Shown here: positions 15,622-37,173 of the stretch, in pieces
How positions within the stretch are numbered: position 1 is the stretch's first letter
Layout: the number at the start of each line of letters is the position of its first letter
Source of the DNA: Blastocladiella emersonii ATCC 22665
Taxonomy: Eukaryota; Fungi; Blastocladiomycota
Reading direction: 5' to 3'
Length of the DNA: 64,000 bases
NCBI GenBank assembly: GCA_025594325.1
Contig: JANHCV010000010.1
Location: forward strand, 806,001-870,000
Program-made: the position numbers and the translations under genes
Notes under the pieces: model-generated
What the model was told of the DNA's origin: nothing
The model's database searches: none
What the model saw: only the letters and a program-made list of their open reading frames with translations

Positions 15622-16938
15622 CTACTTGAGCTCGAGTCCGTGGTCGACGAACCACTGCAGCGAGTTGACCCATCCGAACTTGGACATGCGCTCCATGGCC
15701 CTGGCCGAATACTTGATTTCGCGGCCGGTGCGAGCAAACCAGTTCAGGACCGGGACCGAGCAGTGGTGCGGCGACACGGTGTCGATGGCGAGCTCCGTGT
15801 ACGTGAGCGCGGCCGGCGGCAAGTTCGCAGCGAGCCAATCCAGTGTGTGAATGTTGCCCGCCTGAGCGGCGAGGTTGATGACACGCGAACGCAAGATCCA
15901 GCGAGGGTCGCCGCGCGGAATGAGGTTGGCGAGGATCCAGGCGAGAATCGTCGTATCTGAAGCGTTGATGCCCGAGACAATCAGCATCTCGTGCTGCATG
16001 GAGCAAACCTCGGCACGAAACGTCGAAAACAGCCACTTGAGCGTATGAAGCGGGAACTTGTGGAAATCAAGCTCGAGGTCGGCTACTTGCACGGGCAAGT
16101 CTTGCGCAACCCACCACCGCAACACGTGGAGGTGGTTACCAAGACATGCTTCAAGGAATGGAGTGCGTTGCGTGAACTCGAGTCCGCGTGAGCGAAGCCA
16201 CTTGAGGACGTGCAAATGTCCTTTGGCTGCGGCGTGTTTAATGGCGCTCGTCGTAACCTTGAACTCGAGACCGCTCTTCCACCACCAGTCGAGTACGTCC
16301 ACATGTCCTGAGCTAGCTGCTCCATCAACGGCGCAGCTTGAGTATGTGAACGCGATGTTGTGCTCGACAAGCCACTCAAGCACGGCGCGACGACCGTCGC
16401 AAGATGCCCAGTCGACGGCGTCAGGCGAAAATTTCAGCTCAAGACCGCTCGTGCGCCACCACTCGAGGACCTCGATACATCCAGCTAGCATGGCTTTGTC
16501 GAGAGGTTTACAATCGTACGTAAACGGGGCTCCGGAAGTGCGCCATGCTTCGAGAACTTGGACGTGTAGCGTCCACAAGTTTGCAGGATGATTCGGCACG
16601 GGAAGACCAGACTTGAACCACCACGACAACAGGTCGTGGCGACCCTCCGTGCTTGGCTTTATGAGAGCGTCGACTGGGATCGGGACCTTGTAGTGAGCAG
16701 CGCCGCAATATTTGACATATTCTTTGATTAGCGGAAGGTTCATGGACTTGACGGCATCATGAAAAGTCGGCCGGATGTTGCGACGAAACACGACGCGGCG
16801 GAGCTTTGACAGTCCCGGGGCAACGCGCAGATACGGCAGCGGGTCGAAGCAATATTTTTCGCCAAGGACGGCGAGGACGAGCGTGACCTCGACCAACTCT
16901 ATAGGCAGCCGCTTGCAGCGAGTTCCATTGGATTTCAT
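15622..16938 (-). CDS. Intronless ankyrin-like repeat protein A with F-box-like N-terminal module; probably C-terminally truncated
   Basis: 438-aa ORF with repeated A(S/A)xxGHxxVLxWWxxSGL units. Paralogous to 21204-17198. Confidence 0.75.
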   Translation of the reverse strand: MKSNGTRCKRLPIELVEVTLVLAVLGEKYCFDPLPYLRVAPGLSKLRRVVFRRNIRPTFHDAVKSMNLPLIKEYVKYCGAAHYKVPIPVDALIKPSTEGRHDLLSWWFKSGLPVPNHPANLWTLHVQVLEAWRTSGAPFTYDCKPLDKAMLAGCIEVLEWWRTSGLELKFSPDAVDWASCDGRRAVLEWLVEHNIAFTYSSCAVDGAASSGHVDVLDWWWKSGLEFKVTTSAIKHAAAKGHLHVLKWLRSRGLEFTQRTPFLEACLGNHLHVLRWWVAQDLPVQVADLELDFHKFPLHTLKWLFSTFRAEVCSMQHEMLIVSGINASDTTILAWILANLIPRGDPRWILRSRVINLAAQAGNIHTLDWLAANLPPAALTYTELAIDTVSPHHCSVPVLNWFARTGREIKYSARAMERMSKFGWVNSLQWFVDHGLELK

Positions 16939-17489
16939 GGTTGTTTGTGGCTTAAAGGGAGGGAGGTGAGACCAAGGTCGTTGCGGTTTCGGGGGCGGCG
17001 AAGCGTGGGAGCGCTCGCGAAAGACGCGTGCGGGACATCACGTGCTGTGTACGACACGTGGTTTCGTCCCTTCCTTTTGAAAATACGAGGTGAGCGCGTT
17101 GCGATCACAAAATTTTGACGGAAGTGTAATAATCATATTGCAGACGCGAGACGTGCAGTCGGTAGCCAAGCCAGAAGACGGACTGAACAAGCTTAAACTA
17201 GAGGGACCAGGCTTCAAAGTCCGGCTCAGAATAAAAACAAATCGGGAGCCATCTCGCATACCACCATTTGGCAACCGAGATCTGACTCCGCTGTAGAGCG
17301 CGCGTGCCGATTGCTGGAGAGTATCTGAGGCGGTGCGCGTGGTTCGGGAACCACTGGAGCGAGGCGATCCAACCAAACTCAGGGCCCGTTTGGTTCAGAT
17401 CAGGTGGATCAGCTGAAAAAGTTGCCACGTTTCACCTCACCCCGTTCATCTCAGCGGCCGTGCGAACCAAACGCCCCGCTGGATGAACG

Positions 17490-17509
17490 CCCCCCCCCCC
17501 CCCCCCCCC
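17490..17509 (+). repeat. C20 homopolymer inside the left end of the Harbinger element
   Basis: Twenty consecutive C residues seen directly. Confidence 0.9.
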
Positions 17510-17602
17510 GCAATAAAATCTTTCCCACCTCTTTGCAGCCGCGCTTATTGCAACGAATCAACACCTAACCTCACGCATCGTGTTCTCGAGCCCTCAAACA
17601 AC

Positions 17603-18919
17603 ATGGGCAAGGGATACAACCGCAAGCTGCGCGGCCTAATGCTCACAGCCGCCCTCGCTCTCCTGCGACGTCTCGCTGCTCGCAACGAGCGCCGCTCGTG
17701 GGAGCCTATCCGCACGTCCACGCTTCCGGCGAGTCGTGGGTTCAAGAGCTGCTGACGTGCAACAGCGAAACGCGTTTTTCGGAAATCGCCCGTATGCCCC
17801 GCAAGACCTTCAAGGCCATCTGCCGCCTGTTCCGCGACCGTGGCCTTCTCGCCGACGGCCGCGAGCTGTCCGTCGAGGCGCGCTTCATGGTTTTTCTTGT
17901 CATGGCTGGCGAGGGCAGCACCAACCGCAACCTCAGGGAGCGGTTCCAAATCTCTGGCGAGACCGCGTCCAGGGTTCTGAAGCAAGTGCTCGACGCTCTG
18001 TACCGCCTGATGCCCGAGTTCATTGTCCAGCCGTCCGATTCTACGCCCGTGCATGAGCGCATCGCCCACGACCCAAAATACGCTCCGTTCCAGAACGCGG
18101 TCGGCGCGCTTGACGGAACGCACATCCCGTTTGTTGTGCCCACTAAGCTTCACGACTCGTTCCGAAACCGCAAGGGGACCATATCCTCAAATGTCCTCGC
18201 TGCCTGCGACTTTGACTTGAACTTCACCTACGTTCTTGCAGGGTGGGAGGGCAAGGCGCATGACTCGCGCGTGCTCTTGGACGCCTTCGCCCGTGGGTTC
18301 AAGATCCCCGCCGGCCGCTTCTACCTCGCCGACGGCGGCTACGCAAACCGCACGTCCATCATCGTGCCCTTCCGCGGTACCCGCTATCATCTTCGCGAGT
18401 TTGCCCGCGGCAAGGATGGGTACGTTCTCACTGCCATGACCATCACGTTGGCGCCATCTCATCCGCTTCATCAACGTACGTAGAGTTAAGAACCGCGAGG
18501 AGCTTTTCAATCTGCGTCACGCGTCGCTCCGCAACTCTGTTGAGCGTATCTTTGGCGTGCTCAAGAAGCGGTTCCGCGTCCTCTCGATTGGCGCGGCCTA
18601 CCCAATCAAGACTCAAGTCAAGCTTGTGTACGCGCTCTGCACGCTGCACAACATGATCAACAAGTGGAACCAAGGCGGCGACGCCTTCTTTCGCGACGCC
18701 GAGACGGAGCTCCGGCGCGCGCGGGACGCGGCGCGTGAGGCGCGTGTGCGTGGGCGCGAGCCCCTGAACGACGAGAACGAGGAGGACGACGAGGCCGCTG
18801 TCCTCGAGGCCTCGCTGGACGGAGCTCGTCAGCGCGGTATCTCGCTTCGGAACCGCATCGCAAATGTTCTTTGGACCGAGTACAGGCGCGTCATGGCCGC
18901 TCGTGGGACCCGTCTTTGA
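17603..18919 (+). pseudogene. Harbinger DDE transposase (DDE_Tnp_4-like) with an apparent 1-nt frameshift near 17725
   Basis: Motifs GALDGTH, RNRKG, AGWEGKAHDSRV, YLADGGY, YHL, ELFNLRHASLRNSVERIFGVLKKRF. Intron 18420-18483. The N-terminus (RTSTL) is one base out of frame with SGESWVQELL. Confidence 0.88.
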
Positions 18920-19232
18920 AGGCGCGAAATAATTGTTGTACCCGCATGCATGCTGTAATATACTGATTTGTCAAGTACTATAATGTTATATAAGCGATTC
19001 TAGATGATTTGACGCGTCGCTGAGGTCAGAACGCATCGGTGGAGACGCGTCGATCAATCACGTGACGTGCGAGACACTTTGAGAACCACGCGTTTCTCAA
19101 CGAGTCGCGTCATTTTCGAGCGAAGGGTAACGATTGAAGATACGATGGACACAAAGCCAGATGTATTGGACACAAATGGGCGAGAACAAGGCCAGGAAGC
19201 AACGCGAGGGGAGGGGGACATGTGCGAGTGAG

Positions 19233-19697
19233 CTACTGAATGAAAATCTCGAGGATGCGCTTGCGCTTCGATTCGGACACGGCCATGACGCGAAGCGCTT
19301 GATCCTCGGTCAGGCGGGTGGCGACGTCGATCTGGTACTCTTCATTGTCGTTGTACGCGTCCTGGACCCATTCAAGTGCGGCGGTCAGGACGGGCTTGGA
19401 GTCGGCGGTCGCGACGCTCTGGAACACCTCCTTGATGCCCATGAGGAATTCCGAGTCCGAGAGGCGACGCGAGCTGCTGTCCGAAGTGCGGCTGCGCTTG
19501 CTGGCGGGGGCCGCGTCGTCTTGACCATCGACACCTTCCACGTCACCAGACTCCTTGCCGTCCTGCTCGAGGTGCGAGTACTCGCCGGTGGTGGTCGAGC
19601 CGCCCCACGAAGGAAAACAGCGTTTATATAGGCCGGGAAGCACAGCCTGAAGGTTTCGGGGGCGAGCAGACGGGCAATTCAGCGACGAGGGTTCCAT
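19233..19697 (-). pseudogene. C-terminal remnant of the Harbinger accessory (Myb/SANT-like) ORF
   Basis: Convergent with the transposase. Begins near a GGSTTTGEYS motif and continues through an acidic/Ser linker into a helical tail. No Trp-rich Myb domain is visible upstream. Confidence 0.55.
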
Positions 19698-21544
19698 TCA
19701 GCTCATCCGGGGGTCGACCCAAACGCCGCGATGAACGCGACGGGGTGAAAATGCCACGTTTCAGCTGGGTGAACACCGGACCGTGTAAAATCGATTGATC
19801 CACCTGATTCACCCCGGAACCAAACGGGCCCTCAGTCATGCGCTCCATGGCCATGGTCGTGTACTTGCGCTCAAAGTCGGGCGGGGTGAAAAAGCAATCG
19901 TCGAGCCACCGATTGTACCACCATTTGGCCACCGCAATCTGGCCTCGATCGAAAGCGCGTGTGCCGATTCCTGGGTGGTACTTGAGACGGAGCCCGTGGT
20001 TCGGGAACCATTGGAGCGAGGTGGTCCAGCCGAACTGGGTCATGCGCTCCATCGCCAAGGGCGTGTACTTGATCTCGCAGCCATGCTGGTGGAACCACTC
20101 GAGGATTGGTACCGAGCAGCGAAACGGCGAGACCGCATCAATGGCATACGCTGTGTACGTGAGGGTCTCCGGCGGAATATTTGCCACCAGCCAGTTCAAG
20201 GCGACGATATTTCCAGCTTCGCAAGCGCGGTCGATGACGGACGGGGTCATGGTCCAATGCGGGTCGCAGCACGGGATGATGCTCGAAGCGAGCCAGGCCA
20301 GGAATGTCGAGTTTGGTGCAGTGAGACCTGTCATAATGAGATCATGTCGAGGCAGCGTATCAATCCAGTCCTTGCCAGCTTCAAGAATCCAGTCCAGGGT
20401 TACGCGTGGTAGGCGATGAAAATTCTGCCGGAGCAGGTTGAGATCAATGGGACCGCCGTGAGCCATCCACCAGCGCAAGATGTGGACATGGCCGTTCTGG
20501 CACGCCTTGAGGAAAGCGGAGTGCTGCTTGACTTGGAGGGTGCCGGTTCGCCACCACTCGAGCGAATTGAGGTGACCGGCGGCAGCTGCACCTTCGAAAG
20601 CAAAACTCGAGTAGCTGAACGGAATCCCGTGGTCGATGAACCACTGAAGAACGTGAGGATGGCCGTTGGCCGACGCGCGATCGACAGCATGATGCGTGAG
20701 CTTGACTTCATATCCGCTCGACCGCCACCATTGTAGCGCTTCAATACTTCCGGAAGCAGCAGCCGCTTCAATTGAGAAGTGATCGTACTGAAAAAACGGG
20801 ATACCAGAAGACCGCCAAAGCTCGAGAATCCGCGCATCAGTCGAGTAAGAGTGGGCAACGTGTCCCGTCACACGCAGTCCCGACGTGAGCCACCACGAAA
20901 CGAGGTCAAAGCGGTTGGACATGCTCGGTTGGACGAGGACGTTGTCCGAGACTTTGAAGTGGGCAGCGCCGTAGTGTCGAACGTACTCGCGGAGAAGCGG
21001 CAAGTTCATCGATTTTACCGCATCATTGAACGTCGGCAGGGTCATCTTCTTGAAGACAAGTGTTTGGAGCATAGGCATGCCCGGCGCCACATGCAGGTAC
21101 GGGAGCGGATTGAACCCGGGCTTTTCGCGGAGGACAGTGAGGATGAGGATGTCCTCAATAAGCTCGAGGGGCATCGCTCTGCGAGAAGTTTCATTTGCGG
21201 CCATGGCTTCAAGCTAGTCTTTTGCTCTCGGTGTGACAGGGTTGGAGGAGGACGGGTTTCAGCGAGGGGAAGCCATCACTGCACTCCCAGTACTGCATAC
21301 ACTGGGCCTCGTGACCGAACCGCAGGATTCCGATGAATATTCTCAAGAACAGGCCTCGGTTGCAGCAAGTCTTTGGTCCATTCGATCCGTGTGCGTCGAG
21401 CAACAGGGAGCGCAAGCGCGAGGCCAACCTTGGAGCCGACCAACGAGGCCACGGCGTGGCGCACGTCAAGTCGCCGCGTGTGTCGGCAACCTTCCTCGCT
21501 CTCGGTGGTCGCCCACTTGAATGAAGCAACGATAAACGCAGCTC

Positions 21545-24500
21545 ATGGAAAAATCGCGATTACTGATGGCAATGGTCCGCCGCGATCCGGAGGCCCGCGC
21601 CTCCGTCGCCGCGGTTCGCACCGCCGTGGAAGAGTCGGTTGCTTCCACCGACGCAACCCCCCACGCGGCTCGCCTTGGATCAATCACGAACGATCTTGGC
21701 GTGCTCCAGCTTCATGCTTCATCAATCGGCGTGAGACCCGCGACGGTGCTTGACGTGCTTGGCAACGACGTGATTCTCGCACGTCTCTACTTTGGCTTCC
21801 TCAATCCCAAGGCGTGGGCGCGCTTGTGTGGAACGAGCCGACTTGTGCGTAGCGCCATGATGAGCATCCCGGTCGAACATTTGATGCCGCGCCCCTCGAC
21901 TCGCGCGCGCGCCCTTCACGCCGCGGCCGTTGCGGGTAGCACGCAACGTGTGCGCGAGCTGCTGCCTCACGCCAGCAACCCGGATGTGCGCTTCCACCGC
22001 TGCGAACCGGCCCTGATTGCCGCCGTCAAGAACTTGCGGTACGACGTCGTCCGCGTCCTTCTTGACGCTGGCGCCTCGCCCATCCGCATCCACACCATGT
22101 CGCTGGGCAAGCGTGCAAACGCTTACCACACGGCCATCAAGACGGGCGACGCACCCATGGTCCGGCTGTTGTTGCGCAACTCGTCCGCTCTCAGACGCAA
22201 TCCCAATTTTGCCGTCAACCTCAAGGGCTCTGCTTGCCCCATGACCGCCCTTCACGTCGCCATTGTGAGCCGGTCCGTCGACGTGGTGGAGTTGCTTCTC
22301 GCTGCCGGCGTTCCGCTGCTCCCCGCCCTGACCCAGGCCGAGCTCAACGCCAGCCCGACTCCACCGCATTCGCTACCTCCGATTCCAGCACCTACAACAG
22401 GCACGCCCACGCCCAGTCCTTACCGCACCGACAAGGCCGTGCGTGACGCCTTGGAACGGCGCGCAAGGCGTGTTCGCCGTCCGCTGGATCTTCCTGCGAC
22501 GCGCGAGTCGGAGGCCGCGCTTCTCCTCGGTCTCGCTACTCTCGCTCGCAGCATGACCATGGTCCAGTGGCTCTTTTCGCAGCGTATCCCGGTCTCGGGT
22601 CACCCGCGTACATCAGCGTTGCACGGTCTGCTTGGGGGTAAGACGGCGCTCATGATTGCCGCTGCCCGCGGCGATCTAGCCATGTGTAAGCTGCTGGTCG
22701 AGGGCGGCGTGCCACTTGTTCCGCCGCCGGGCACGTTGTCACCAAAGAGTCGAATTGGGCGGCAGGCGATTGATATCGCACTTGAAGAGAAGAGCATTGA
22801 CGTGTTTAACTTTCTCCTCGCCGCGCACACCAACCAAGGCTGTATTGTTGGTCACACGTGCGGTTCGGCTTTGACTGTCAATGCAAACGAAAAGCGTCTC
22901 GTAAAGTCTTTTCTCCAGTGCGCTACGGTGCACGGTAAAGTTGATGTGTTCAAGGCTCTCATCGATGCCGGGGCCCAGATTACGACCCCATGGCGCCCGT
23001 GGACCCAACCTGCGCTGCCCGCGTCTATGGCTGCGCTTGAACGCGTGCCTGGCGTTGATGATGCAGGCGACGGTGGCTACGTTCTCATCTGCCTCGCTCT
23101 GCGGTCCCGCCACGTGTCCATTGTTGATCAACTGTGCGCGGCTGCAAAGTGGATTCCGTGGAACGCCGCGGAACACCTGCGCCAGCACGCCAAGTCTCAA
23201 TCCGTTGCTGGACCCAGCGATTACACTCCGCCATCGTTCCTTGCGCCTGTTTACTCGAGCGTGCCGTTGCTTGGCAAGACTCCACTTCATTTTGTCCTCT
23301 TGTGGCCGCCCCACTTGTGGCAGCCGGTGGCCAACAAACTGCTTGACGGACACGCGTTTGTTAACGTGCTCGACTGCAACGGGCGGACGCCGCTCGATCT
23401 TGCCCTTGCCGCGGACGGCGTTGGCATCAATCATCCCGTCGTCGTGCGGATCTTGGCGCGCGGCGTCTACGCGTCGCACAACACTTACGTCATGCTTCTG
23501 CACTACGCCATCGCCACCGGCAACGAAGCGCTGCTGGCCAAGGTCTTGTGTGCGTCGCCTGCAACTGGAACGCGCGCGGGCCCCGAGGCCCTCACGCCAG
23601 CGGTCATTGGCTTCACGCACCCGAGCTCGAAGGCGCAGGGCCGCCCGGCGATCGATTGCGACATCATGGTACGTGCTATTGTCCGCGAAACGGCATCAGC
23701 CAGCAATCTGACAACCGGACGCGCTCGAATCTCAGGACCTTCCGCCCATGCTCATCGCCAAGTTTTCGATCATTGCCCAGCCGCTTGACCCGAACTCCAA
23801 TTTCTCGCACAGCAACCCGATGCCCAATGCCGCGGGCCATCTCGACATGGCGGACTCCCGCGTGAGCTGCATCATCACGCCGCTGATGCGCGCCCTGATT
23901 CAGCGCCGCTTGAAAATGGTCGACATGCTTTTGGAGGCCGGCGCGAACCCAAACCTTGGTGCGGTCGGCGAGTGCGCCACCAGTGCGTTTTGCCCGCCAC
24001 CTGGGGTCGCCCTTTCGCGGTCACCGCTCGCCCAGGCCATCGCCATGGCCAACCGCGACGCTTTTGAGCTTCTTCTCCGCCATGGCGCAAGCATGCGAGT
24101 TGGCGAGCACTCCGTGACCAAGTGCGACGGGCGGATAACCATTGACTTGGAGTCTCGTCGCGGACCGTCGTCACTTGGCGGTGGTGCTGGGAACACCGCG
24201 GGCAAGTGGTGGGCTCCCGAAACCGATCCTGGTTGCCGTATGACGGTCGCTCGGTTTGCGCGTGCCTTGCTTGCGGCCGTCCAACGGCGGGAGCGGGAGT
24301 CGCTGGGCAACGGCGCCGAGTTCAAGTTTGTGCCTGTTTCGCGACTCGAATCGTCGTCGCACCTCGGCTCTTCGTTCACTCCCGCGCCTGTCGATCGGGC
24401 GCCAGCCATGTCCTTTGATTTCGGCAACGGCGACTCGGCTACTTTCGTGTCCGCGCCTGCATCCGATCCGACAACTGGTTTCGACTTTGTTGCCCCTGCA

Positions 24501-25223
24501 CCGGTCCCTGTTCCTCTCGGCCAGCGCCCCACCTTCCCGTCGACCACCATCACACCGCTTCGCAGCGCTGGCAGCGGTGCCACGCCCCAGTTTGCGCCGG
24601 CAAAATACGCGCCCGCGACCGTCACGCTTGACAACGACTCGGCCCACTTCTCGATCGCTTCGCTCGCGTCCAACCCGAACTTGACTTCGGCGGCGCTTGC
24701 GCCGTTCGTTGAGCTTCTCACCGCGCTCAATGCGCCGCACACGTGGCTCCGCATCCCGTGCGAGCGCGTATGCTTGCTCTCGCGCCGATTCATGGGCGTT
24801 CTTGGTCACAAGCACGACGAGAGCGCACGGTGTCTCGATTGCGACGTGAGTCGCGCAAGCGAGTTCAGTGGGTCATCGGCGGCCGCTTCTGCGCCCGAAA
24901 CGCCCGCGGGCATGCGCGCGAAACGACGCGGCGCGAGGACGACCGAAGCGCGATCTGGGCTCGCGTTTGGGTCATCAAGCAGCAGCAACGGAAGCGGTGG
25001 GCCGGCGATCTCGTCCTCTGCTCACTCCATCGCTGCTGGATCAACTGGGCCATCGCTGCCCTTCGCGTTCACGTTTGCTTCTTTGACATCGACATCCCCA
25101 TCGCCATCGCTTACTTCTGCTCCTGCGTCGACAAGCGCCCCGCTCCCCTTCACTTTTGGCGCAGCGGCGACGGACTCGGCTAGCGCAACGGGCGTTGCGT
25201 CGCCCGGACGTCCCTCAGCGTGA
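21545..25223 (+). CDS. Large ankyrin-repeat protein (about 1200 aa) with F-box-like segment and Ser/Phe-Gly-rich tail
   Basis: Intron 23669-23735 (GTACGT...CTGAC...CTCAG) joins the 747-aa and 491-aa ORFs in frame (IM-DLPPMLIAKF). Ankyrin units ALHAAAVAG, TALHVAIV, KTALMIAAARG, GRTPLDLA, TPLMRAL. F-box-like VLDVLGNDVILARLYFGFLNPKAWARLCGTSRLVR. Confidence 0.8.
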
Positions 25224-25610
25224 TTTGTTTGAAATATAGTTTCTGCATGAGTTTTAGTTTGTTAATATTGACTCGTAATCGACTTATCTTGAGCTGTGAT
25301 ATACCGGGCCAGCGCCCAAACATGCCGAACCACGGAAGGACTTTCGCATCTCGCGTCCTGCATCCATCGCTGGACCACGCATCGATGAAGGAGGCCATAA
25401 TCAATGTGTCTTCGCTCCTATTGATGATCACGGGTCTGGTTAAACGATCACGGCGGAACGAAGGTGAGTCGAAAACGACGCGTCGATTTATCATGTGATG
25501 AAGCAGTGTGGCTGAGACAACAGCGGGACGATCGCTGAGCGCGAGACGACGACTTTCACTCCCTGCACTCCTTGCCCCCTTCAATGAACGTCACGTAGAC
25601 TTGATGCAAA

Positions 25611-27334
25611 ATGCTCAAAGCTATTCATGTGCCCGAAATCCTTGAGACAATCCTTGTTTATGTCATTCGACAACACGACCCTGCCGACACGGCTGGGCTC
25701 CTCGAGTAAGCGCGCGTCTTGCCGCGGTCGCTCGCCCCGCATATTGAGCGTGTGCTCCTAAAATGCGCTGTAACTCTCTCTTATGATGCCGCTACTGCGC
25801 GCGGCGACATGGTCTTGCTCAACAAGCGGTCCACACATGGCTTCCCTCTCCACTGCTCACCCGATGCCCTCGAGACCGCCATCAAGGCACGCCACCTATC
25901 GACACTCGAATGGTGGCGAGACACGCGCTCGCTCGACCACTTGGAGATCCAAGCTGCTCTCATCAAGCGCCGCGTCAGGTCTTGCGCCTACGTTGCGCTT
26001 GGGCTTCCTCGTCCCTTGTCGCCCGATGACGTTGTCATCCAAATGATTCCTCCGCCCGACTATGATGTCGTCCTCGCCGAGCTTTGCGACAACGTTGCCA
26101 AGGGCGAGATTGGTGAGTTGTCACTCGATTACCTGCAGCTCACCACGGCTGGAGTCGACGTCCTCAACAGATCAATGGCGAGTCCCTCCCAGAAACTGCA
26201 GTCGATTACTGTCGAGGGCTGCACCATGGACCTTCCTCGTCTGCTCGCTATCCAGTTGCCCGAGACCCTTATCAACGCTAAATTTTGGAACCATTGGGTT
26301 AGCGGCCGAGCATCATCGATCGACCAGCTCTCTCCGATGACATGGCCCTCAAACCTCGAGTCGCTCACGTTTATATTTGCCGACCTTCCTCGAGCAGTTC
26401 CACTCCTTTTCCAGGGTCTTCCTGCGACGCTCCAGTCTCTTTCGGTTACCTACTGCTCGCTGGATGACCAAGCCGTCTTTGAACTCGTTCAGCTGTTGCC
26501 GAATACCCTCCACCATCTCGACTTGGATGGCAACGAACTTACTAGTGCGGGGCTTGCCTGTCTTCCGCCTCACCTTCCAGTCTCTCTCAAAGTTTTCAAG
26601 TTGGTTATCTTTCCTCCGAGACTCGTTGGGCCACAGCAAGCTACACTCGTGATTTGCGCGCCCATCCTACGCGCCTCACATCGCTAAGTATTATTTGTGG
26701 AAGCCTGCGTCACGGCGCGTTGGAGGCTTTCAAAGTTACCGCGTCCTCGCTGAGCCATCTTGGGCTCCACATGCTACGGCTCAAGAGACGTGCGGTTGAT
26801 ACGCTATGCAAGCTGCTTGCGGAGAACGCTGGAACTCTCGATTCTCTCGATGTCTTCAAGTGCACCATGCCGCGTGCCAGTCTGCTGACTCTACTTCCGT
26901 GGCTTCCCTCCGCTCTCAAACGGCTCAGGCTCAGCAATGTCCGCCTTGGGCCCGACGGCGCTGTCGACCTGGCGCTACACATGCCTCCTTCCCTTCAAAA
27001 GCTCGATCTCGGGTGCACGTGGCTTAATGACGCAGCGATTGCGGCACTGACGCCTGCGCTTCCAGCAACTCTTGCCGAGTTGAATCTCGGCTGGAACCAG
27101 GAGATCACGGATGTGGGAATCATGACTCTTGCGCCTGCACTTCCAGCAGCCCTTGTCAACCTGAACCTCGCTTCCAACAAAATGAGCGACGTGGGGGCGA
27201 CCGAGCTTGCGAGGCAGTTGCCAAAGGGGCTCAACATCCTCAATCTTCTGCGCAACAACGGAGTGACGGCCAATGGTCGGGCTGCCGTTCAGGCGCTCGC
27301 TCCGCCCGATGCGATGATCTGTTTTGGTGACTAA
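25611..27334 (+). pseudogene. RNI-like LRR gene with premature stop and frameshift
   Basis: MLKAIHVPEILETILVYVI...GLLE*ARVLPR has TAA at 25707-25709. A frame change near 26605 links the 322-aa and 226-aa ORFs. LxxLxLxxNxI repeats. Paralogous to 30074-28146. Confidence 0.8.
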
Positions 27335-27546
27335 GTCCGCCTTGCTTGACTTCCCGTATTTTTGCCCTTTGCGCCGTCGCGGCGTTGTGCTATCTCTTTC
27401 TAAACCTAGTCCAAATCTTCAATACATAATTAACGCTAACCCCACAGTATGTCATTTCTTACCTCACACAACAAGCGACAGCGTATTCTAGCTGTGACGT
27501 TCGCTCAAGGGAAGCTTGTTCTTGTAGCTCAGGAACCCTTCGACAC

Positions 27547-27840
27547 TTATCCCTTGCTCCAAAAGCGAGGGTGATTGTGGGATGTGGGCAATCGGGGCTC
27601 AAGCAGCTGGTCACGCTGTGGCGCAGCACGTCCTGAATGCTCAATCCAACTGAACGAAGTAAATATATTTACAGGAAGGGTTCGATCCATGTTCAATGAC
27701 AAAGCCCATAATGCTCCAACATGGTGCTCCAAGCTCGCGAGTAATACCTTGCGGCTACAATCGTCCGGGTCGCCGTGCCGCGCGATCGCATAAACAAGAA
27801 CCCGCTCGAGTATCTCGGGGACATGCATGGATCCGAGCAT
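27547..27840 (-). pseudogene. Relic 5' end of another LRR-family gene
   Basis: MLGSMHVPEILERVLVYAIARHGDPDD closely matches MLKAIHVPEILETILVYVIRQHDPAD, then degenerates. Confidence 0.6.
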
Positions 27841-28145
27841 TTTGCATCAAGTTAACGTTGCATAGAGTGAGGTTTTCGACGGCAGTGTGACGCGATGGAG
27901 AGAGCGAGACGGCGCTGGAGCCGGCAAGCCAGCTCGTTGGAAGCCCGCGCACTGCGGTCACATGATAGATCAACGCGTCGCTCGTCGCGTCCCTCGCCGC
28001 GGAGCTCGGGACGGATTTACCACCACCGTCACGCCAACCATATCGAGGTGCTATACTGGTGCATGACCGACGGGGTCGATCTCCAGCCAAAGTACGTCCA
28101 ACAAGCCTTGGCGACTCAAGAGGAACTGAAGGAAACCTGCTTATA

Positions 28146-30074
28146 TTACGTTCGCACGAACAACCCTCGCGGATTTTGCCCGAGCACGCGGACGCCCAAC
28201 GATTCGAGGCGTGCCTTTCCCTCGTTCGAGATACCCGTCCGCTTGAGATTCACAGTTTTCAGGGCCGAAAGAGCGCGAGCCTCGAGCAAGCCCGCGATCT
28301 TGTCGTCCACGCTCAAGTTGTCAAATAGATCAAGGGATGTGAGGGTGTCGGGGAAAGCAGAGACTAGCGGCGCTGCAGTGTCGCTTGAGATCGAGCACGA
28401 GTTGAGGACCAGGCTGACGAGAGAATCCGCGCGTCGAAGCCATGAAGCGAATGCCTCAACATCTTGAGTGGTGAGGGATGCGCCAGTTAGGGCTAAGTGA
28501 GCGAGGCCGCTTGCGTCAAGCCGCTCGAAGAAAGCCGCTACCGACTCGTACAAAATTCCGCAACCAACCAACTCGAGTTTCTTGATACTTGGTGGGATCA
28601 TCGCTCCAATAGTGGCCGGGCGAGGTGGGACCAGGGAAACGTTCTCAAGTTTGAGCTCCCGGAGACCGGTGCACGAGGTAAAGACCGCGTCAAGGAACTC
28701 GAGGAGTCGTAAATCACGGCCATAGATGCCAAACAGTTCGAGACGGGTCAGCGTTTGAGGAAGAGCAGAAACAAAATCGGCCAAGCTGTCGTAGTCGATG
28801 TGCTCGAATCCGAGGCCAAGCTTACTGAAGTGCGGCAGTTGACGCGCCATAAACGCTTCAGCTAGGGAACAATCCAACGCTTCGAAGCTAATATCAAGGT
28901 CGACGATTGACGCTGGGAGCGCTCCAACGACGAGCGTGGGATGAAGCCAGTAGGGAGGAAGCCAGTGTTGCTTGGGCGAAATACAGCATCGTTTGAGCGA
29001 AAGCCGCTGAAGCCTCGAAAGCTGGGGCAGCCGATGCAAAAAGGCTTGGAGTTCGCGATCCGTTGCCAGCGTGTTATCCGACAAATCCAATTCCAGCAAT
29101 CCGAGCGGAAGCAGCCCAAGAAGACCTGAAGCGTCGGAGCGTTGGGGAAACAGCTCAGAGCGTCTCCAAGTGTCGAAGCGTAGGGCAAAAAAGCATTTGC
29201 GCAGAATCAAGCGCTCCAGAGTTGGCGGGAGATGAAGTCCGAGAGCCGATGCGGCTGCCGTGTCGAGTTCGTTCTCGGATAGATCGAGGCTAGCCAGAGT
29301 GGGCGGCAGGCGAGGCACAAGCTCAACGATCGCGTGCGGGTTGAGTGAACAATATTGCAGGCTGAGTGAAGCCAAGGATGGCGGTAAGATGCACGAGAGC
29401 TGATCAATATCGGGAAACACGTTCTTGCTGAGATCGAGTCGGGTGATGGTGTTTGGAAGGTGAAGCGCGGCCGCACGGGCAACGCTGAGGTTGCAGCAGA
29501 TGAGCGAGATGCAAGTCACGCGCTGGTCAGGGCATGTGAGCGCGCGGTTGAGTCCCTCGATGCCGTCAAGCGTTAAGCGCTGCTTTTCGAGCTTGAGCTC
29601 CTCGAGTTGACCAGCAGCGATCGCGTCCTCGAGGTCCGCGACTGCTTTGTCGCATCGGGCAGGAAAAAGCGGCGAAAGCTTCGATTCCCGTGCGAGCGCA
29701 GTCAAAAGCCGCTCCTCTTTCTTGCAGTACTTCCAAATCCGCATGGTGGCGTAATGGTCTCGCCAGAACGCAATCACGTCGCCAAAGTCTTCATGGAGCG
29801 CGTGGTTGAGCGAATCATAGTCGATTGCGAGTGGGTATCCAAAGCTGTGCAGAAGCCGAAGAAGCGCCGCGTTGCCAGCCATCGTTGCTTGCTTGTAGTT
29901 GCATTGACAGTGATCGAGAACTGCCCGCGTAACTTTCGGAGCGATCGCGCGCGGGAGCACACCGAGGTACGGTGTCACTCCGCGCAGGTCCCCTGGAGGG
30001 TGAAGCTTGACGGCGCGGACCAGAACGGCCTCGATAATGTCGCCGACGGCCAGTTTAAATTGCAGCAAGTCCAT
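28146..30074 (-). CDS. Intact intronless RNI-like LRR protein with F-box-like/ankyrin-like N-terminus
   Basis: 642-aa ORF. LRRs such as ITRLDLSKN, LASLDLSENEL, LLELDLSDNTL, LTSLDLFDNL. Confidence 0.85.
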   Translation of the reverse strand: MDLLQFKLAVGDIIEAVLVRAVKLHPPGDLRGVTPYLGVLPRAIAPKVTRAVLDHCQCNYKQATMAGNAALLRLLHSFGYPLAIDYDSLNHALHEDFGDVIAFWRDHYATMRIWKYCKKEERLLTALARESKLSPLFPARCDKAVADLEDAIAAGQLEELKLEKQRLTLDGIEGLNRALTCPDQRVTCISLICCNLSVARAAALHLPNTITRLDLSKNVFPDIDQLSCILPPSLASLSLQYCSLNPHAIVELVPRLPPTLASLDLSENELDTAAASALGLHLPPTLERLILRKCFFALRFDTWRRSELFPQRSDASGLLGLLPLGLLELDLSDNTLATDRELQAFLHRLPQLSRLQRLSLKRCCISPKQHWLPPYWLHPTLVVGALPASIVDLDISFEALDCSLAEAFMARQLPHFSKLGLGFEHIDYDSLADFVSALPQTLTRLELFGIYGRDLRLLEFLDAVFTSCTGLRELKLENVSLVPPRPATIGAMIPPSIKKLELVGCGILYESVAAFFERLDASGLAHLALTGASLTTQDVEAFASWLRRADSLVSLVLNSCSISSDTAAPLVSAFPDTLTSLDLFDNLSVDDKIAGLLEARALSALKTVNLKRTGISNEGKARLESLGVRVLGQNPRGLFVRT

Positions 30075-30711
30075 GATTCATGAGGTACGTATGAGTTGAG
30101 GAGAGAAGTTAAATAACTCTGCGCGACTTAAAGAACGCACGCACGTCGCAGTCCACGTCACTGCCAACTCACTCACCTGCTCACTCACCCGGCTGCCGCT
30201 CGGTCGCACTCACTCACTCGAGGAAATTTGACTCATTTCGTTCGCTTGAGGAGTCAATTCTCGCTGCAATACAATCAGCCTCGGTTGCACCAAATTTCAT
30301 GGTTCATTAGATGCATGCGCGTTGAGAAGTGGGCTTGGGCGCTGACAATCAGGTTACATTGCAGCAAGTCCATGATTCATGAGATGCATGTGCGATGAGG
30401 AGTGGATTGAACTTGGCGGGAGTGGAGAGGGCGTCGCCGAAACGGCTCCCAGCTTGAGGGAGCTGGCGTCACGCCTGACGTCAGGTCCGAAGCATGGGTC
30501 GCGACGCGACAGCTGATGCCAGGGTCAAAATGTTTGCCATCAGGTCTGGCGTCAGACCACGCAGCAATCGTCGCGTCAGACGTGACGCCAGGCCTGACGC
30601 AACGCTTGATGCGAGGGTCGGTGCCTGGTTCGCGCCGCGCTCCCGGATAGCTCACGTGCTCACCCTGATAGGCATACTGATAGGCCGATTCGAATAATAG
30701 TGCTATAGTGA

Positions 30712-31880
30712 TCATGATACGCCGCTACACGCGGCCGCCACCGCGCCCATCCGGCGCTCGCGGCCCAAGCTCTTCCGCGGCCGCCGTCCCCGCCACTCCT
30801 TGATGCGCGGGAACGAGTGCTTGAGCTCGGTCTCGATGCCGCTGACCCGTGGCCGCCCGCCCACCTTCGACGTGGCAGTCGATCTTGATCGGGCTGAGCG
30901 GGTGCGCTTGATGGCCGCGCGGAGGCTGGCGCCCTTGATCTCCTTGAGTGACGTGATCTCGCACTTGGCGTCGGCGATGGCCACGGTCACCGACCGTCGC
31001 AGCGAGTCGGGCTTGGACTTCTGCGCCGCCGAGTGTCGTTGCCCTGGTGCAGAGGGGCGCAAGGTCAGCGACGCGTAGAGAGAGAGGGGCGGTGCGCGCG
31101 AGACGTACCGCGTGGTCCTCGTAGCCGAGGGCGACTTGTCCTTGCACTGCAGCGAGTCGAGGACCTTGGTCTTGTCGATGTTGGCGCCAGCAAGCTGCCG
31201 CTTGATCTGCAGTGAGACGCGTACGTGCGTGTTAGCGATGGGCTCGAAGCGCGCATCCTAGGCCGCGGACCAGGTCGAGAACGCACCGTGATCGAGCATG
31301 CCCTGGATCTCGCTGTATTTGACCTCGAACACCTTGGAGAGTCCGAGAAACAGCACGTCAGAGTCGATGACCATGGTCGGGGCCGTGGCTGCCGTTGCTC
31401 AAGGTCTTCGGCCGTCGCGGACGCGTCCTTGGTGACCATGGCGGTACAGCCGGTGATCGAGTCGAGCTTGGCCTCGCCGACGCCTTGGGCACGCGGACGA
31501 CGGCGCCCAAGAGTGCCGACACCCGCAGCAAGTGAGAAAGCGTACCGCATCGCCAAGCAGTTTGGCGGCCTTGATCACGTCGGCGAGGACCGCGGTTGCT
31601 TACACGGCCGAGGACGCGTCAGAAAGCGGGTCACGTCGTAGCCGCGGCGACACACGCGCACACATTGTCGAACTCGGCCGTGAACTCGCTTGGCGGGGCC
31701 CTTGTCGAACGTGTCGGTCGCGTAGACGCCTGACCTTGGACGCGTCACCGAGACGGCCGATCGTGTCAAACGAGGCGCACTTGGTGTTTTCGAGGCGTTG
31801 GTCGACACAATCGCTCGGTGGGCGGAGATCCGGACGAGTGAGGTGACGAAGGAGACGGGTCAGCGTGGTTCGAACGACAT
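30712..31880 (-). pseudogene. Decayed multi-intron gene of unknown function, divergent from the Plavaka transposase
   Basis: Several canonical introns on the minus strand (GTACGC...CCAAG, GTGCGT...GCTAAC...CTGCAG, GTACGT...GCTGAC...CCAG). They separate coding-like blocks (AVLADVIKAAKLLGDA, VIDSDVLFLGLSKVFEVKYSEI, IKRQLAGANIDKTKVLDSL) that do not join in one frame. Confidence 0.5.
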
Positions 31881-32539
31881 GTCAAGGCGGCGAGTGATAA
31901 GGGGGCGATGACGGACGGCACCGAGCCAATTCGACACATGGGTCAATCGGCAGCGGTGCCGTGCGTCGTAAGGGCGAAGAGTGTCGAGGGGAGGGGGAGG
32001 AAGTGGGGCGGATGAGTCGACGGAATACGCGCGCTCGCCGACTCAGCACGACGCGGATGCACCGCCGCGGCGGCGACGCACGTCTCCTTGGTTGGACCAA
32101 GCACGTCTCGGGGGTCGGTTCGTCGTCTTAGGCGAGCGTGGAGGCCGCGGACACGACTCGGACCCGGCGAGCGATGCTGCGAAGCCGGCCCCATGACGCG
32201 GGCGCCGCGGTGGCCGGCACGGTGTGGGCGACGTACGGGCGGGCCTGCGTGCGAGTCGCAAGAGCAGAGTGTGTCGATTGCATGGTGGTAAGTGGGGTCG
32301 GGCGGGGACTTGGCGGGTCGGCGGGAGCGGCAGCCATCCGCGCCCAACGCGCGCGCTGAAGAAGGATCGGCGGCGGACGAAAGCGTCACGTGGCATGACC
32401 TTCGCGTCCCTCGCCTCCCTCACCGCTCGACGCACCATGCAAATCTATCTTGCGAATCTATGCAACCGACCTGAAATGCCGAGCTCTACCTCTTGCTATG
32501 CCTGACGCTGTCAAATCTGTGTGTTTGCGCTCACACAGC

Positions 32540-33967
32540 CCCAATCTCGCCGTCGGAACTTGTCAAGTTCAAACTTCTCACGCTCTATGAGCTCCACTGC
32601 ACTCTGCTCCGCGGATCAGCGCCGAGTGACCGGTCGCTCGAGTACGCCGAACTGGCTCTCGGTTGGTTCAACCAGGCCGCTCGCCAAGTATGCGCGCGCC
32701 TCAACGACTCCACCGTGATCCACACGCTCAAGTACCACTGCCTGAGCGAGTACGTCGAGTTCATCAAGCGCTTCGGCCCCACCACGAACCTGTCGACCGA
32801 GGCGAGGGAGCGCGCGTACCAGTTCAACGCCAAGCTCGTGGTTAAGTTCACGAACCACACGGCGACCTCGACTGAACAGACGTTCTCGCGCATGGCCTCG
32901 TGCGTGGCCCTGCAGGCGATCGTGCGCGCGCGCTTGTGAGGGAGTGTGACCCCGCGGTACAGAATCGCTGGCTCTCGCGCGCCGTGGAGCATCACTAACG
33001 CTCGCGTCGTCACTCTCGCATCACAGGAATACGAGGGCATGGACGAGGTCTTCAACAACCTGGCCGAAGTGCGCCTGAGCACGCTCAAGGCGACGACGTT
33101 TGACCTCAGCAAGTTTGGTCCCGGGCGCGAGGTGCACTTCTGCTTCGGCACGACCGCGGAGTTGAGCGTCACCCAGCTCTCGACCTCGATTCCGTTCCTC
33201 GCCCAGATCCTCCACGGCTACCTGGCCGAGGATTCCGGACTCTCGGCGCAGCGCGCGGCCGACGACCCGCTGCTGGGTCCTGACGACGGCAAGGTACCCG
33301 CGTGCACGCGATCTGCATCAAATTGACGAGGAACTGACGCTTCCCGGCTCGCGATGCGTGTAGTTCCTCATGTCCAAGGCAATCTCGTTCGAGGCCTTCT
33401 CGCTCGGCGGGTTCCGCAACGAGCAGATCACGGGAACGTGCGAGTTCCCGACTCGCGGCAAATCGCACGCGGACTGGGTCATGGTACGCTGCTTGCTGAG
33501 CTCACACCCAAATCGTTCGGTCGCTAACATCTGCTATATCTCGCGTTCGGTAGTATCGCACGTCGGACAAGAAGGACCGCGTCGGGAAGCTAGCCGCCGC
33601 GCTGCACTTCACGCACAACGGCACTGAGCACGACATGGCCATTGTCGAACAGTTCCGCGTCCAGAACGACGCGCCGGGCAGCACCGTAACGTGCAAGGAC
33701 TTTCCCGTGCAGGCGCTCGCCCTGCATCCCGCGGAACCGGGTATAGGCCTCGGTCGGTACCACGCCGTGAGCGTGACGGACTTCCAGACGTTCGTCCACG
33801 TCGTGCCCAACTCCGATTGGCCCGCGGCGCCTACGCGCGCGGGCGCAGCCAACGCCCTGCTCAACAGCGAGTACAGGGAGTGGCTGCTCAATCCGTTCGA
33901 CTGCGCGGGGTCGGCCGCGCTCATGGCGTACCTGTGGGAGCGCGACCTGCTCGAGGTGGTTGTGTAG
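32540..33967 (+). mobile_element. 3' half of a Plavaka-type (CMC/CACTA superfamily) transposase gene, 5'-truncated
   Basis: KYHCLSEYVEFIKRFGPTTNLSTEARERAYQFNAKLVVKFTN matches the recalled Plavaka pattern K-x-H-x-L-x-H/E-Y...I-R-x-F-G...N-x-S-T-E...K...TN. Four exons (about 32540-32922, 33026-33293, 33364-33483, 33555-33967) join without stops. No N-terminal half or clear termini. Confidence 0.7.
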
Positions 33968-34289
33968 GGTACCCGTTGGGTCCCGCGGCGGCGCCCAGCG
34001 GGCGTCGCTGGTCGAAATACATGACCTCGCTCTCTCAGCTGCCGCGGCGGTGACCTTGCGCGCGTTTCGCGCTCGCGAGCAAGGCGGGCTCACAGGTAGA
34101 ACACGAATTACAGCGGGAAATCTCCTTCCGCCGCGTCACCGTCTCTAGTAGTCGCTCATAAACAAGTTGCATCAAGTTGGAGAAGAGTAGGATTCATGGT
34201 TCGTGGTCGGGGTATACGTGGCGGAGAGCCGGGACTCTCGCGTCGCAGTCCACGTCAGTGCCAACCCGGCTGCCTGAGCGTCACTCGCT

Positions 34290-34784
34290 CTCTAGAGATC
34301 TCCACTTTGTCGACCTCGGCACAGATTATCTTATGGACCAGGTAGTCGATCATTTGGTCGCCGCGGGTGGGCACACACGGTCGCGAACGTTCGTACATCT
34401 CAAGTGCGGGAATCAATCGTTCGTCGTAACCTGGGCCAGGGGAGACTGGCCTCGGAATGTGAAGTCTCCAAAACTCGAGTACCTCGTCAAATTCGCCTTC
34501 GGGCGCAGAGTGAAGTGACTCGAGGTCGATTTTGGGCTCGAAGCCAAAGGCTCGGCGGAGCTTTAGCAGCTGAATGTTACCTTGGCGTGTTGCGTGACTA
34601 AAGTCCGCGCGGTCGCAATGCTCGAGTACCGCACGCGTCACGTTTGGCACACGCGCGCGGGGCAGGACGCGAAGGTACTGCGCCATGCCGCGCAGGTCGT
34701 CCGGGGCGTGATGTCGAACCGCGCGGACCAAGATCGCCTCAAGGATTTCACCGATATTTTTAGCTTAGGTTACAGCAAGTTCAT
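34290..34784 (-). pseudogene. 5'-end relic of a paralogue of the 30074 LRR gene
   Basis: MNLL* (TAA at 34772-34770 where the intact gene has CAA), then a frameshift, then EILEAILVRAVRHHAPDDLRGMAQYLRVLPRARVPNVTRAVLEHC. This aligns with IIEAVLVRAVKLHPPGDLRGVTPYLGVLPRAIAPKVTRAVLDHC. Truncated before the LRRs. Confidence 0.8.
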
Positions 34785-37173
34785 GGTTCATTCGATGCAT
34801 GAGTGGGGTGTACGAGGGAGGAAGCGCGGAGGTGGGTGGGAAGCAGGGTGGGAAGTCGAACACGATGCGACGCCGCGCGTTTTTCTCCTGCTCGGCCGTG
34901 ACCCCGCACGGCTGTGACCTGCGCGTCGACACGCTCACGTTCCAAATTCCGGCTCGAGCCCCGTACTCATGTTTGCAGGGCTAGTGCGGCGGGTGGCCCT
35001 GAGGAACGACCAGTTGCGGGTGTAGCAACGGAAGCACTAGCCCAACGCGCGGCGATCGACCGCGAGGCACCTGAACTCGGCGCTGCGCAGCTCCGTGCTC
35101 GCGGGTGATGATGGCCTTTGCGGCGATCGACAAGACCATGAAGACCAAGTGCCCGCTCGTTGCGGACTGTGTGTCAGAATTTGACCTCTACGGCGCGCTC
35201 GTCGTGAAGCGTGAACAAGGCCATGGCGTACAGAGGCGCGGCCTCGACCTCGTCGGCGGCGGCCACGGTGGATGCCTTGGTTGTGCATCGCACCATCGTC
35301 GACGTGCTCGATCCGACCGTCGCGGACGTTGTATTCAGTCGACTTGGCGCAAGAACACGTCGAGGCCCTCGCGGATCCACTGAGCGAAGCAAGTGGCCGA
35401 GCGCTTGATCTCAAAAGCGAGACGGGGAACTTAGCGCGTGAGTCGGCCGTCCTGTCGGCGAGCACGAGGCGCGCGGCAGCATCTTGGCCCGCCGCAGCGA
35501 GCGTGGCCTCGACGCCGGCCTTTGCGCTCGCGCAGCGCGTTGTTCGCGATGGTGAGCAGCGCCGAGTCGCAGTACAGCTTGTGGCCATCGACCAGCGCGT
35601 GCTCATGGTTGAAAGTTGACGGCACGGTCGGTCGCGGCTCCAACTCCGCGAGGACGTTGATAAAACTCAGTCGCGCACGTCGAGATCTTGCTGAAGCGTT
35701 CAGAGATTGATGGCATCGTCACCGTGTGGTCGCGCCTCATGACGATCGCGTCGAGCGGCATGAGCGTGTTGTGTTGGTCAAGCTCGGGTCAGACATGAGT
35801 ACGGCATGGTTCAACCACGAGGGCCACAGTCATGGACGAGGCGCAGCGACGAACGGCGGCATACAACAACCAGTCGAGGTTCCATTACGCGCTGTAAGCT
35901 GATCGCTGATGTGAGTAGCGAATAGATGCTTCGCGACCCACGCATACAGCCCGATCTCGAGCCATGTTGTTGTTTGATGCGCAGGAACACGTTGCAGACG
36001 AGGCTGATACTCAGAGAGCGAGCGTGAGTGTGACGGCGGCCGCGGACGCGAAGACGCATCGTGCGTCCGTCCGCCGGGAGCCCGACGTGATCAGCGTGAC
36101 CCCACCGCTAATTGAGATCAGCGCGGACCCTGATCCGATCCCGATCGACCATGGCCTTCTCCGTCACGAGTCCGTGGCCACGGCCGGCCAAGCTCAGTGC
36201 GACGTCGCGCGGTACACATGAGATCGGCGCGAGGAAGCCTCACCAGTGGTGCATGTCGCCGCTGGTTTGCGGCTGCTTCACAAATCCGATGACAAGCAAC
36301 GCGATTGAACATATCGGCGGCACCGCGACCACATTTGCTGACTGGAGCCCGGCTGCGTTCATTGCACGACTCGCCCGCCACGAGCCGCCCCGAGACGCGG
36401 CGAGCGTGCGATCGTCCCCAGAGCGGATGCGAGCCCCCGCTCGCGCACCTCAGGTGACCTATCCCTCCGCGGACTGGATCTGCGTTCAAAAGGGGTCGGC
36501 CACGGGTCGCTCGGTCACCAGCTGAGCCGCTCGGTCGCGAGATTCCCCGCACCCCGCTTTCAGGACACAACCAACCACGAACTGCTCTCTGTTTCGGCCG
36601 AGCCGCAGCGCCTGTGCTCGCTGCGCACACCGCGATGGATCTAGCGCCGCCGCGGCCGTCGGATAGGCCTGCCCCGCGCACAAGGTCCACGCACCAGGAC
36701 GAACCTGCGCCCCTGCAACCCGTTGAGGCAAGCTAGAGGTCCAGCCAAGTCCGCGTTCTGGAGCATCCGAGTCCCACGCTGCGCGCGCGCGCGTGCGAGG
36801 TCCAGTTCAGGGGACGACCCCTTGCGCGCGCGGGTGGACTGCGTGGGCCGCGGCTGCGATGCGGGAAACCCACGCGGGACCGCCTGGCTCCCCCGCGCGC
36901 GCCGGAGCGGCCGGAGCGGTCGGCACGGGGCGCAGGCGTAGTCGGCCGTTTCACGCGCGACGCGGCGCCGATGCTCATCGATCGGGCCTCGGAACCGAGG
37001 GTCGAGACCCCCGAGTCGGCGGGCGGGTCGGCGTCGACCACCACGAGCAAACACACGCCTCACGCAACACACACACGCAAAAAAATCAAGAGGAGAGAGT
37101 ACAGGTATTGAAGACGGAAAAATGAATCAAGTAAAAAAAATTGCGACCACGACCACGACCACGGCTCCGCTCG

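Follow-up and report, generated by a model that had tools for sequence, protein, structure and literature searches.

The described systems closest to the locus discussed here are the FBXL-type F-box proteins (Skp2, Grr1, FBXL3), the Legionella protein AnkB, which carries an N-terminal F-box together with ankyrin repeats, the poxvirus ANK/PRANC proteins, in which the PRANC module is C-terminal, and the ASB (SOCS box) and FEM1 receptors. F-box families are large and fast-turning in plants and nematodes, as is the family reported here. We have analysed a window of 64,000 nucleotides from the zoosporic fungus Blastocladiella emersonii ATCC 22665 (G000:C2:806001-870000; genome assembly of 32.65 Mb in 21 contigs), in which six genes or relics between 15.6 and 34.8 kb open with a related N-terminal segment, hereafter the head. 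A first-pass annotation had described this head as an F-box-like module placed before two different repeat-protein families; all six N-termini are indeed present in the translations, and the architecture is also as described, the head being followed either by ankyrin repeats alone or by about two ankyrin units and leucine-rich repeats (LRRs) of the ribonuclease inhibitor (RNI) type, as indicated by Pfam (Ank_4, LRR_6) and by an AlphaFold2 (AF2) model. Our reading, to which we assign a probability of roughly 60%, is that the cluster is part of one Blastocladiomycota-specific superfamily of soluble repeat proteins that probably act as adaptors; the family proteins show neither a start resembling a signal peptide nor a clear membrane segment.

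The relationship between the two kinds of head emerges at the level of profiles. In the window the ankyrin type is represented by AnkA (15622..16938, minus strand, Met at 16938), whose open reading frame (ORF) and translation of 438 amino acids (aa) are intact, and by AnkB (19624..21204, minus strand, Met at 21204; a 526-aa ORF), and the LRR type by one intact gene (28146..30074, minus strand, Met at 30074; an ORF of 642 aa, Pfam LRR_6 E 5e-8). The first-pass annotation had staked its idea of a common module on a significant alignment between the two families. Pair by pair such an alignment fails, BLASTP of AnkA or AnkB against the intact LRR gene being not significant (E 0.4-1.6), whereas profile against profile it is found: from 60 fetched loci, about 50 paralogues in total, we aligned 26 ankyrin-type heads (A1) and 27 LRR-type heads (A2), and hhalign of A1 versus A2 returns a probability of 96.5% and an E-value of 8.2e-10 over 77 columns, so that, judged by this comparison, the two heads are homologous. 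Because the homology continues through the first ankyrin repeat, the common unit is longer than the 40-55 aa initially assigned to it and spans about 77 aa, that is, three helices plus the first ankyrin repeat; the relatedness of the N-termini across families therefore stands, and their stated length does not. The merged family alignment (A4; A1, A2 and A4 include AnkA, AnkB and the intact LRR gene among their rows) is coherent, with an invariant L in helix 1 and, within the V-x-P motif, an invariant V and a near-invariant P, the motifs following one another as LPxELIExILxxAV, a loop, Y-L-R-V-x-P and a third helix. All six window copies align to this unit and so belong to the head-ankyrin superfamily. 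A chance resemblance of short amphipathic helices would fit the insignificant pairwise scores, but the profile-profile E-value over 77 columns refutes it, and in addition some genome loci are matched by both ankyrin-type and LRR-type queries and a single hidden Markov model (HMM) retrieves both architectures from the protein collections; we give this explanation almost no credence.

Confident structural models show three helices followed by two ankyrin repeats. An AF2 model of aa 1-135 of the intact LRR protein, with 46 paralogues in the alignment, reaches a predicted local distance difference test (pLDDT) score of 89.6, rising to about 96 across aa 11-110, and a predicted template modelling (pTM) score of 0.77. 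Its predicted head helices lie at aa 10-24, 30-37 and 46-55, the helices predicted at aa 60-65/69-77 and 86-94/98-106 correspond to two ankyrin repeats (aa 58-110), and a predicted linker helix (aa 120-133) leads to the RNI-type LRRs, which begin at about aa 160. VIA-align superposes aa 52/58-134 of this protein onto dozens of ankyrin domains (Z 4.6-6.5). Ankyrin repeats are recognised in both types, through Ank_4 in AnkA (E 2e-13) and AnkB (E 1e-10) and through the ankyrin fold predicted for aa 58-110 of the LRR protein, and RNI-like LRRs are recognised through LRR_6 in the intact LRR gene and in both ORFs of the LRR-type pseudogene treated below. A different view of the same model would see in the head only a lineage-specific cap at the N-terminal end of the ankyrin solenoid, the proteins being generic scaffolds and their F-box likeness convergent, and we consider this somewhat unlikely: the head and the ankyrin repeats do fold as one confident unit, the homology between the two types does extend beyond the head, and neither Pfam on the heads nor a PDB profile search detects a known docking domain, but one would not expect a simple cap to be better conserved than every other segment, in hundreds of paralogues and between genera, and the head of AnkB modelled alone (aa 1-58) folds without its repeats (pLDDT 83.6; helices at aa 13-26, 34-38 and 44-55). 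Under the superfamily reading that we favour, the common unit of about 77 aa would be a three-helix head fused to ankyrin repeats; in the older form, present also in Allomyces and Catenaria, this unit would be continued by further W-W ankyrin repeats, while in a derivative expanded in B. emersonii RNI-type LRRs would have taken the place of the distal ankyrin repeats. Docking to a common partner would then fall to the constant head-ankyrin unit, and binding of different targets to the variable repeat array.

Searches of the genome and of related fungi bear out the expectation of a wider family. In its own genome the N-terminal 110 aa of the ankyrin type find 88 places and the LRR-type head finds 356 candidate places, 150 of which were scored, all at E < 2e-6; most family places are single open frames of 400-700 aa. 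Among 1.84 billion representative proteins, the A4 profile matches 63 at E <= 1e-3 (best E 1.3e-21, none below 1e-30), and of the 30 that were looked up 23 come from B. emersonii ATCC 22665 and six from Allomyces macrogynus, A. arbusculus, A. javanicus and Catenaria anguillulae, a few matches being spurious repeat matches. The Allomyces and Catenaria members are all ankyrin-type and the sampled LRR-type members all come from B. emersonii, which suggests that the combination of head and ankyrin repeats is older and the LRR type derived. LRR_6 is present in 16 of 56 database members. FNIP repeats, weakly matched in six database members and at two weak places in a genome scan, were considered as a third architecture and discarded as LRR cross-matches.

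That the family might be undescribed had also been proposed, and the literature and database entries agree with this: the genome paper (PMC9730499) makes no mention of ankyrin, leucine-rich or F-box, a paper on expansions in early-diverging fungi does not cover the head-ankyrin family, and members stand in GenBank as 'hypothetical protein' or 'Leucine-rich repeat-containing protein' (KAI9188264.1, KAI9168168.1, KAI9183188.1), the first two of them with N-termini identical to those of paralogue loci L005 and L036 (P0001 and P0002, respectively, in our protein set). The public protein collections did not yield the three window genes at 15622-16938, 19624-21204 and 28146-30074 (best 40% identity), despite the presence of these genes in the query profile; they therefore seem to be unannotated in the deposited genome. 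In three long annotated proteins, KAI9168245.1 (P0023), KAI9168406.1 (P0025) and KAI9156002.1 (P0036), the head lies far inside; one such protein with an internal head is a 1494-aa 'Nitrogen permease regulator 3' (NPR3) with the head at aa 1056-1127, and in these entries a family gene and its neighbour have probably been joined in one gene model. A word-based protein search with aa 1-110 of the LRR protein returned nothing, and in a language-model atlas the whole LRR protein retrieved only generic LRR and ankyrin clusters, below 0.9.

The part of the first-pass annotation that the analysis does not support as stated is the assignment of the head to the F-box. No Pfam F-box family matches any of 8 window proteins at E <= 0.1, nor any of 53 heads at E <= 10 or of 56 database members at E <= 0.01 (109 members for the latter two sets), and ten database members, Allomyces and Catenaria proteins included, likewise give none when rescanned at E <= 10. 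Ordinary F-box genes are present in the same genome (47 PF12937 and 27 PF00646 places); genome scans with these two models put no place within the window or at family loci, and the 72 PF12937 places obtained at E <= 10 neither overlap any of the 238 listed family places nor fall within the window. Against a profile of 28 F-boxes from the same genome (A3), hhalign aligns the ankyrin-type head over helix 1 only (19 columns, probability 37.6%); with the LRR-type head the alignment spans 16 columns at a probability of 4.4%. A forced global alignment to the F-box profile lowers the score from 22.2 to 15.0 for the ankyrin type, and the LRR type drops from 15.7 to 13.5. Helices 2 and 3, which in the F-box carry a conserved hydrophobic core (V-S/C-K/R-x-W ... 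L-W), are not alignable, and the head has V-x-P in place of V-(S/C)-(K/R)-x-W. A three-helix fold like that of the F-box had been anticipated; three helices are predicted, but Foldseek with both models gives nothing below E 1 and no F-box chain, and a wide VIA-align search with the head gives only unrelated helical pieces (best Z 5.1) and no F-box in the top 50, in searches run without a positive control and in which small domains give low Z. A PDB sequence-profile search with the head returned no F-box protein; its matches to the bile acid receptor (E >= 0.2) were set aside as chance.

The resemblance that does exist is concentrated in helix 1. The ankyrin-type consensus RLPxELIExILI conforms to the F-box helix 1 motif L-P-x-E-(I/L)-x-x-x-I-L, and the LRR-type head conforms only in part, its Pro being lost. 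For the ankyrin type, the helix 1 score of 22.2 exceeds those of 100 column-permuted F-box profiles (mean 7.9, sd 1.5, maximum 12.7), controls that overstate the z-score because column permutation destroys helix periodicity. When full-length profiles are compared with the F-box profile, helix 1 is the best region of the ankyrin type (23.5; next 12.0), whereas the head of the LRR type does not exceed its own background. As far as sequence comparison reaches, then, helix 1 is F-box-like, the rest of the head is not, and the head cannot be classed with the F-box families. It might nevertheless be a true, strongly diverged F-box, which would turn the family into a giant set of Skp1-binding substrate receptors of Skp1-cullin-F-box (SCF) ligases, and we regard this as possible but rather doubtful. 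To the helix 1 score and its standing as the sole matching part of the full-length ankyrin-type profile this view can add three predicted helices of roughly F-box size, an FBXL-like placement at the N-terminus, before LRR or ankyrin repeats, three Skp1-like loci in the genome (C15:2012492-2012704, C1:792512-792658 and C1:3199651-3199794), and the fact that the nearest neighbours of AnkB aa 1-60 in the language-model atlas are F-box clusters (0.80 and 0.75), which lie below the trusted level and serve as a lead only. It has to contend with the absence of Pfam matches and of coinciding genomic places, with local alignments of 16-19 columns whose scores fall when extended, with the exchanged core motif, with an LRR-type head that does not stand out, with PDB profile and fold searches devoid of F-boxes, and with an inflated z-score. 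Most fungi carry one Skp1 gene; the copy number found here was rejected as a sign of SCF expansion, three loci being uninformative in this respect. More specifically, the head could have branched off from the F-box within Blastocladiomycota and lie beyond the reach of all current profiles, a similarly tentative proposition. We retain the superfamily reading, in which Skp1/SCF would be the leading candidate partner of a head that is not itself classed as an F-box.

Separately from the family, weak PF12937 matches confined to profile positions 2-30 occur on contig 20 (C20:1073624, 1158736, 1172050 and 1341452) and at C5:347222, in ORFs of 500-680 aa and one of 130 aa, which may represent another family with a diverged F-box.

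The intact copies are under purifying selection. Estimates of the ratio of nonsynonymous to synonymous substitution rates (dN/dS), which the first-pass annotation had named as a check, range from 0.13 to 0.9 in the closest intact pairs and are below 1 in each of the regions compared (head, ankyrin, linker, LRR), with dS mostly 0.3-2; AnkB versus paralogue locus L003 gives 0.24-0.28. Together these values indicate old functional genes rather than recent amplifications. Recent tandem duplication within the window was examined and rejected, since the window copies are not each other's nearest kin and none exceeds 81% DNA identity to any of 56 loci; the absence of close relatives among them points to an old, mixed and decaying neighbourhood and not to a fresh tandem array, so that the label of birth-and-death cluster fits in a long-term sense. 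The same observations bear on the suggestion that the family could be a diversifying repertoire of immune, allorecognition or effector proteins. Its size and clustering, the many pseudogenes and transposons, the lower-GC island in which the cluster lies and the use of LRR and ankyrin arrays, both common recognition modules, are what such a repertoire might look like, but there is no NB-ARC/NACHT, TIR, death-fold or signal peptide, dN/dS is below 1 region-wide and close recent duplicates are missing; the immune or effector role put forward in the first-pass annotation thus finds no support, and we consider it improbable.

Several points weigh against the superfamily reading as we have framed it. 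The adaptor function and the common docking partner, most likely as they appear to us, are read from architecture, and the derivation of the LRR type, which we infer from a sample of database matches, does not come from a rooted tree. The head is the best-conserved part among paralogues and has the lowest dN, a conservation that is inflated insofar as the paralogues were gathered by searching with the head; in LRR-type pairs (L031-L059), moreover, dS amounts to 0.3-0.7 in the head, roughly half the 0.6-1.5 of the LRR part, and gene conversion or constraint at the 5' end may for this reason explain part of the conservation of the head.

Within the window the cluster lies in a lower-GC island at 16-36 kb (55-65%, mostly below 62%; most of the remaining window is at 65-77%), which is also home to transposon sequences. 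In AnkA, W-W ankyrin repeats come after a head of about aa 1-57 (16768-16938); the 438 aa of the protein match the length of intact paralogues (434-456 aa), and it is 45% identical to AnkB over the full length. In AnkB the family homology runs from 21204 down to about 19863-19874, where the blastn matches to the paralogue loci L002 (80.5% over 1348 bp) and L003 (77%) both end. The last 80 or so codons of the ORF are non-family sequence, which implies a disturbed 3' end, beside a Harbinger element. This element, placed against the 3' end of AnkB, contains a Harbinger/PIF-type DDE transposase ORF (17698..18483, plus strand; Pfam DDE_Tnp_4 E 3.9e-12, and HTH_Tnp_4). Abutting its left end is a remnant from the 3' portion of an ankyrin-type gene (17213..17380, minus strand), 68% identical to AnkB aa 390-445 by tblastn and, by blastn, 79% identical to window positions 19916-20036 and 75% to L002. 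The DNA immediately left of the element is thus a 79% copy of a segment inside AnkB and not the continuation of AnkB, and a picture in which one gene was split by one insertion may need checking.

The LRR-type copies show other forms of damage. A pseudogene comprising head, ankyrin units and LRRs (25611..27334, plus strand, Met at 25611 by translation) has a TAA at 25707-25709, at the position of a Tyr conserved in its paralogues, and a frame change near 26650-26690, with ORFs 25719-26687 and 26654-27334 in different frames; both carry LRR_6 (Pfam E 1.6e-11 and 5e-5). It matches the intact LRR gene by tblastn at E 3e-32, and its nearest available paralogue is L006, at 72% DNA identity. In inverted orientation follows a head-only relic of the same subfamily (27547..27840, minus strand, Met at 27840), the translation of which begins MLGSMHVPEILERVLVYAI and shows no repeat part after the head. 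The last copy is an LRR-type relic of head and ankyrin part only (34255..34791, minus strand, from six-frame translation; own-genome match C2:840456-840758), 40% identical to aa 10-169 of the intact LRR protein (tblastn, E 7e-31) and devoid of an LRR part. The sixth N-terminus had been placed at 34784; the relic exists, and the coordinate is approximate, EILEAIL beginning at 34749 on the minus strand, the likely Met lying at 34791 and the frame being interrupted by an early stop at 34767. Decay in the window would accordingly have proceeded by nonsense mutation, frameshift, truncation and transposon insertion, and two or three copies would remain functional under purifying selection. This agrees with the earlier estimate that about three of seven copies are intact or nearly so: AnkA and the LRR gene are intact, AnkB has its disturbed 3' end and the others are broken.

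Downstream of the intact LRR gene, a piece of the transposon block, at 30790-30998, is 76% identical to L002:3123-3323 on contig 5 (G000:C5), which adjoins an ankyrin-type family gene, so that one mobile element family neighbours family genes at separate loci. Between AnkB and the LRR pseudogene lies a large canonical ankyrin protein (21545..25223, plus strand; a 747-aa ORF and an overlapping 491-aa ORF; Pfam Ank_2 E 1e-32), which had been credited with a more canonical F-box-like segment than the heads. Pfam detects no F-box in it, and hhalign finds nothing against the head profile and only a weak match to the F-box profile (probability 10%, E 0.003, 36 columns at aa 68-105). It was accordingly dropped as a family member and as a clear F-box protein; by these profile comparisons it is a neighbour of the head family and not a member.

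The head-ankyrin family appears to rank among the largest gene families of this model zoosporic fungus and is invisible to Pfam, much of it seems to be absent from the deposited annotation, and a profile of the head would allow its annotation across Blastocladiomycota. If the head docks Skp1, the sequence definition of the F-box would be widened and an early-diverging fungus would possess a very large ubiquitin-targeting repertoire; were the head truly an F-box offshoot, several hundred additional SCF receptors of ankyrin or ankyrin-LRR type would be served by only three Skp1-like genes, among the largest expansions of ubiquitin receptors known in fungi. If it does not dock Skp1, the head would be a new docking or capping domain. 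In either case the cluster illustrates the swapping of repeat arrays on a constant head.

Compared with the known systems, the family shows both common features and differences. Like the FBXL-type proteins, it sets a short helical N-terminal module before RNI-like LRRs, and the ankyrin-type head even carries the helix 1 motif LPxE(L/I)xxxIL; unlike them, it has a head for which no match to F-box HMMs or, in the fold searches, to an F-box was found and which reads V-x-P in place of V-S/C-K/R-x-W, and it inserts two ankyrin repeats between head and LRRs. With Legionella AnkB and the poxvirus ANK/PRANC proteins it has in common the joining of a small helical module to ankyrin repeats, but their modules are recognised by F-box or PRANC profiles and the head by neither. 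The ASB and FEM1 receptors, finally, use ankyrin arrays as the target-binding part of an adaptor, as is proposed here, and FEM1B and ASB9 are among the structural matches returned by VIA-align, matches for which only the ankyrin fold is responsible; the family of B. emersonii shows none of the SOCS, BC or Cul boxes.

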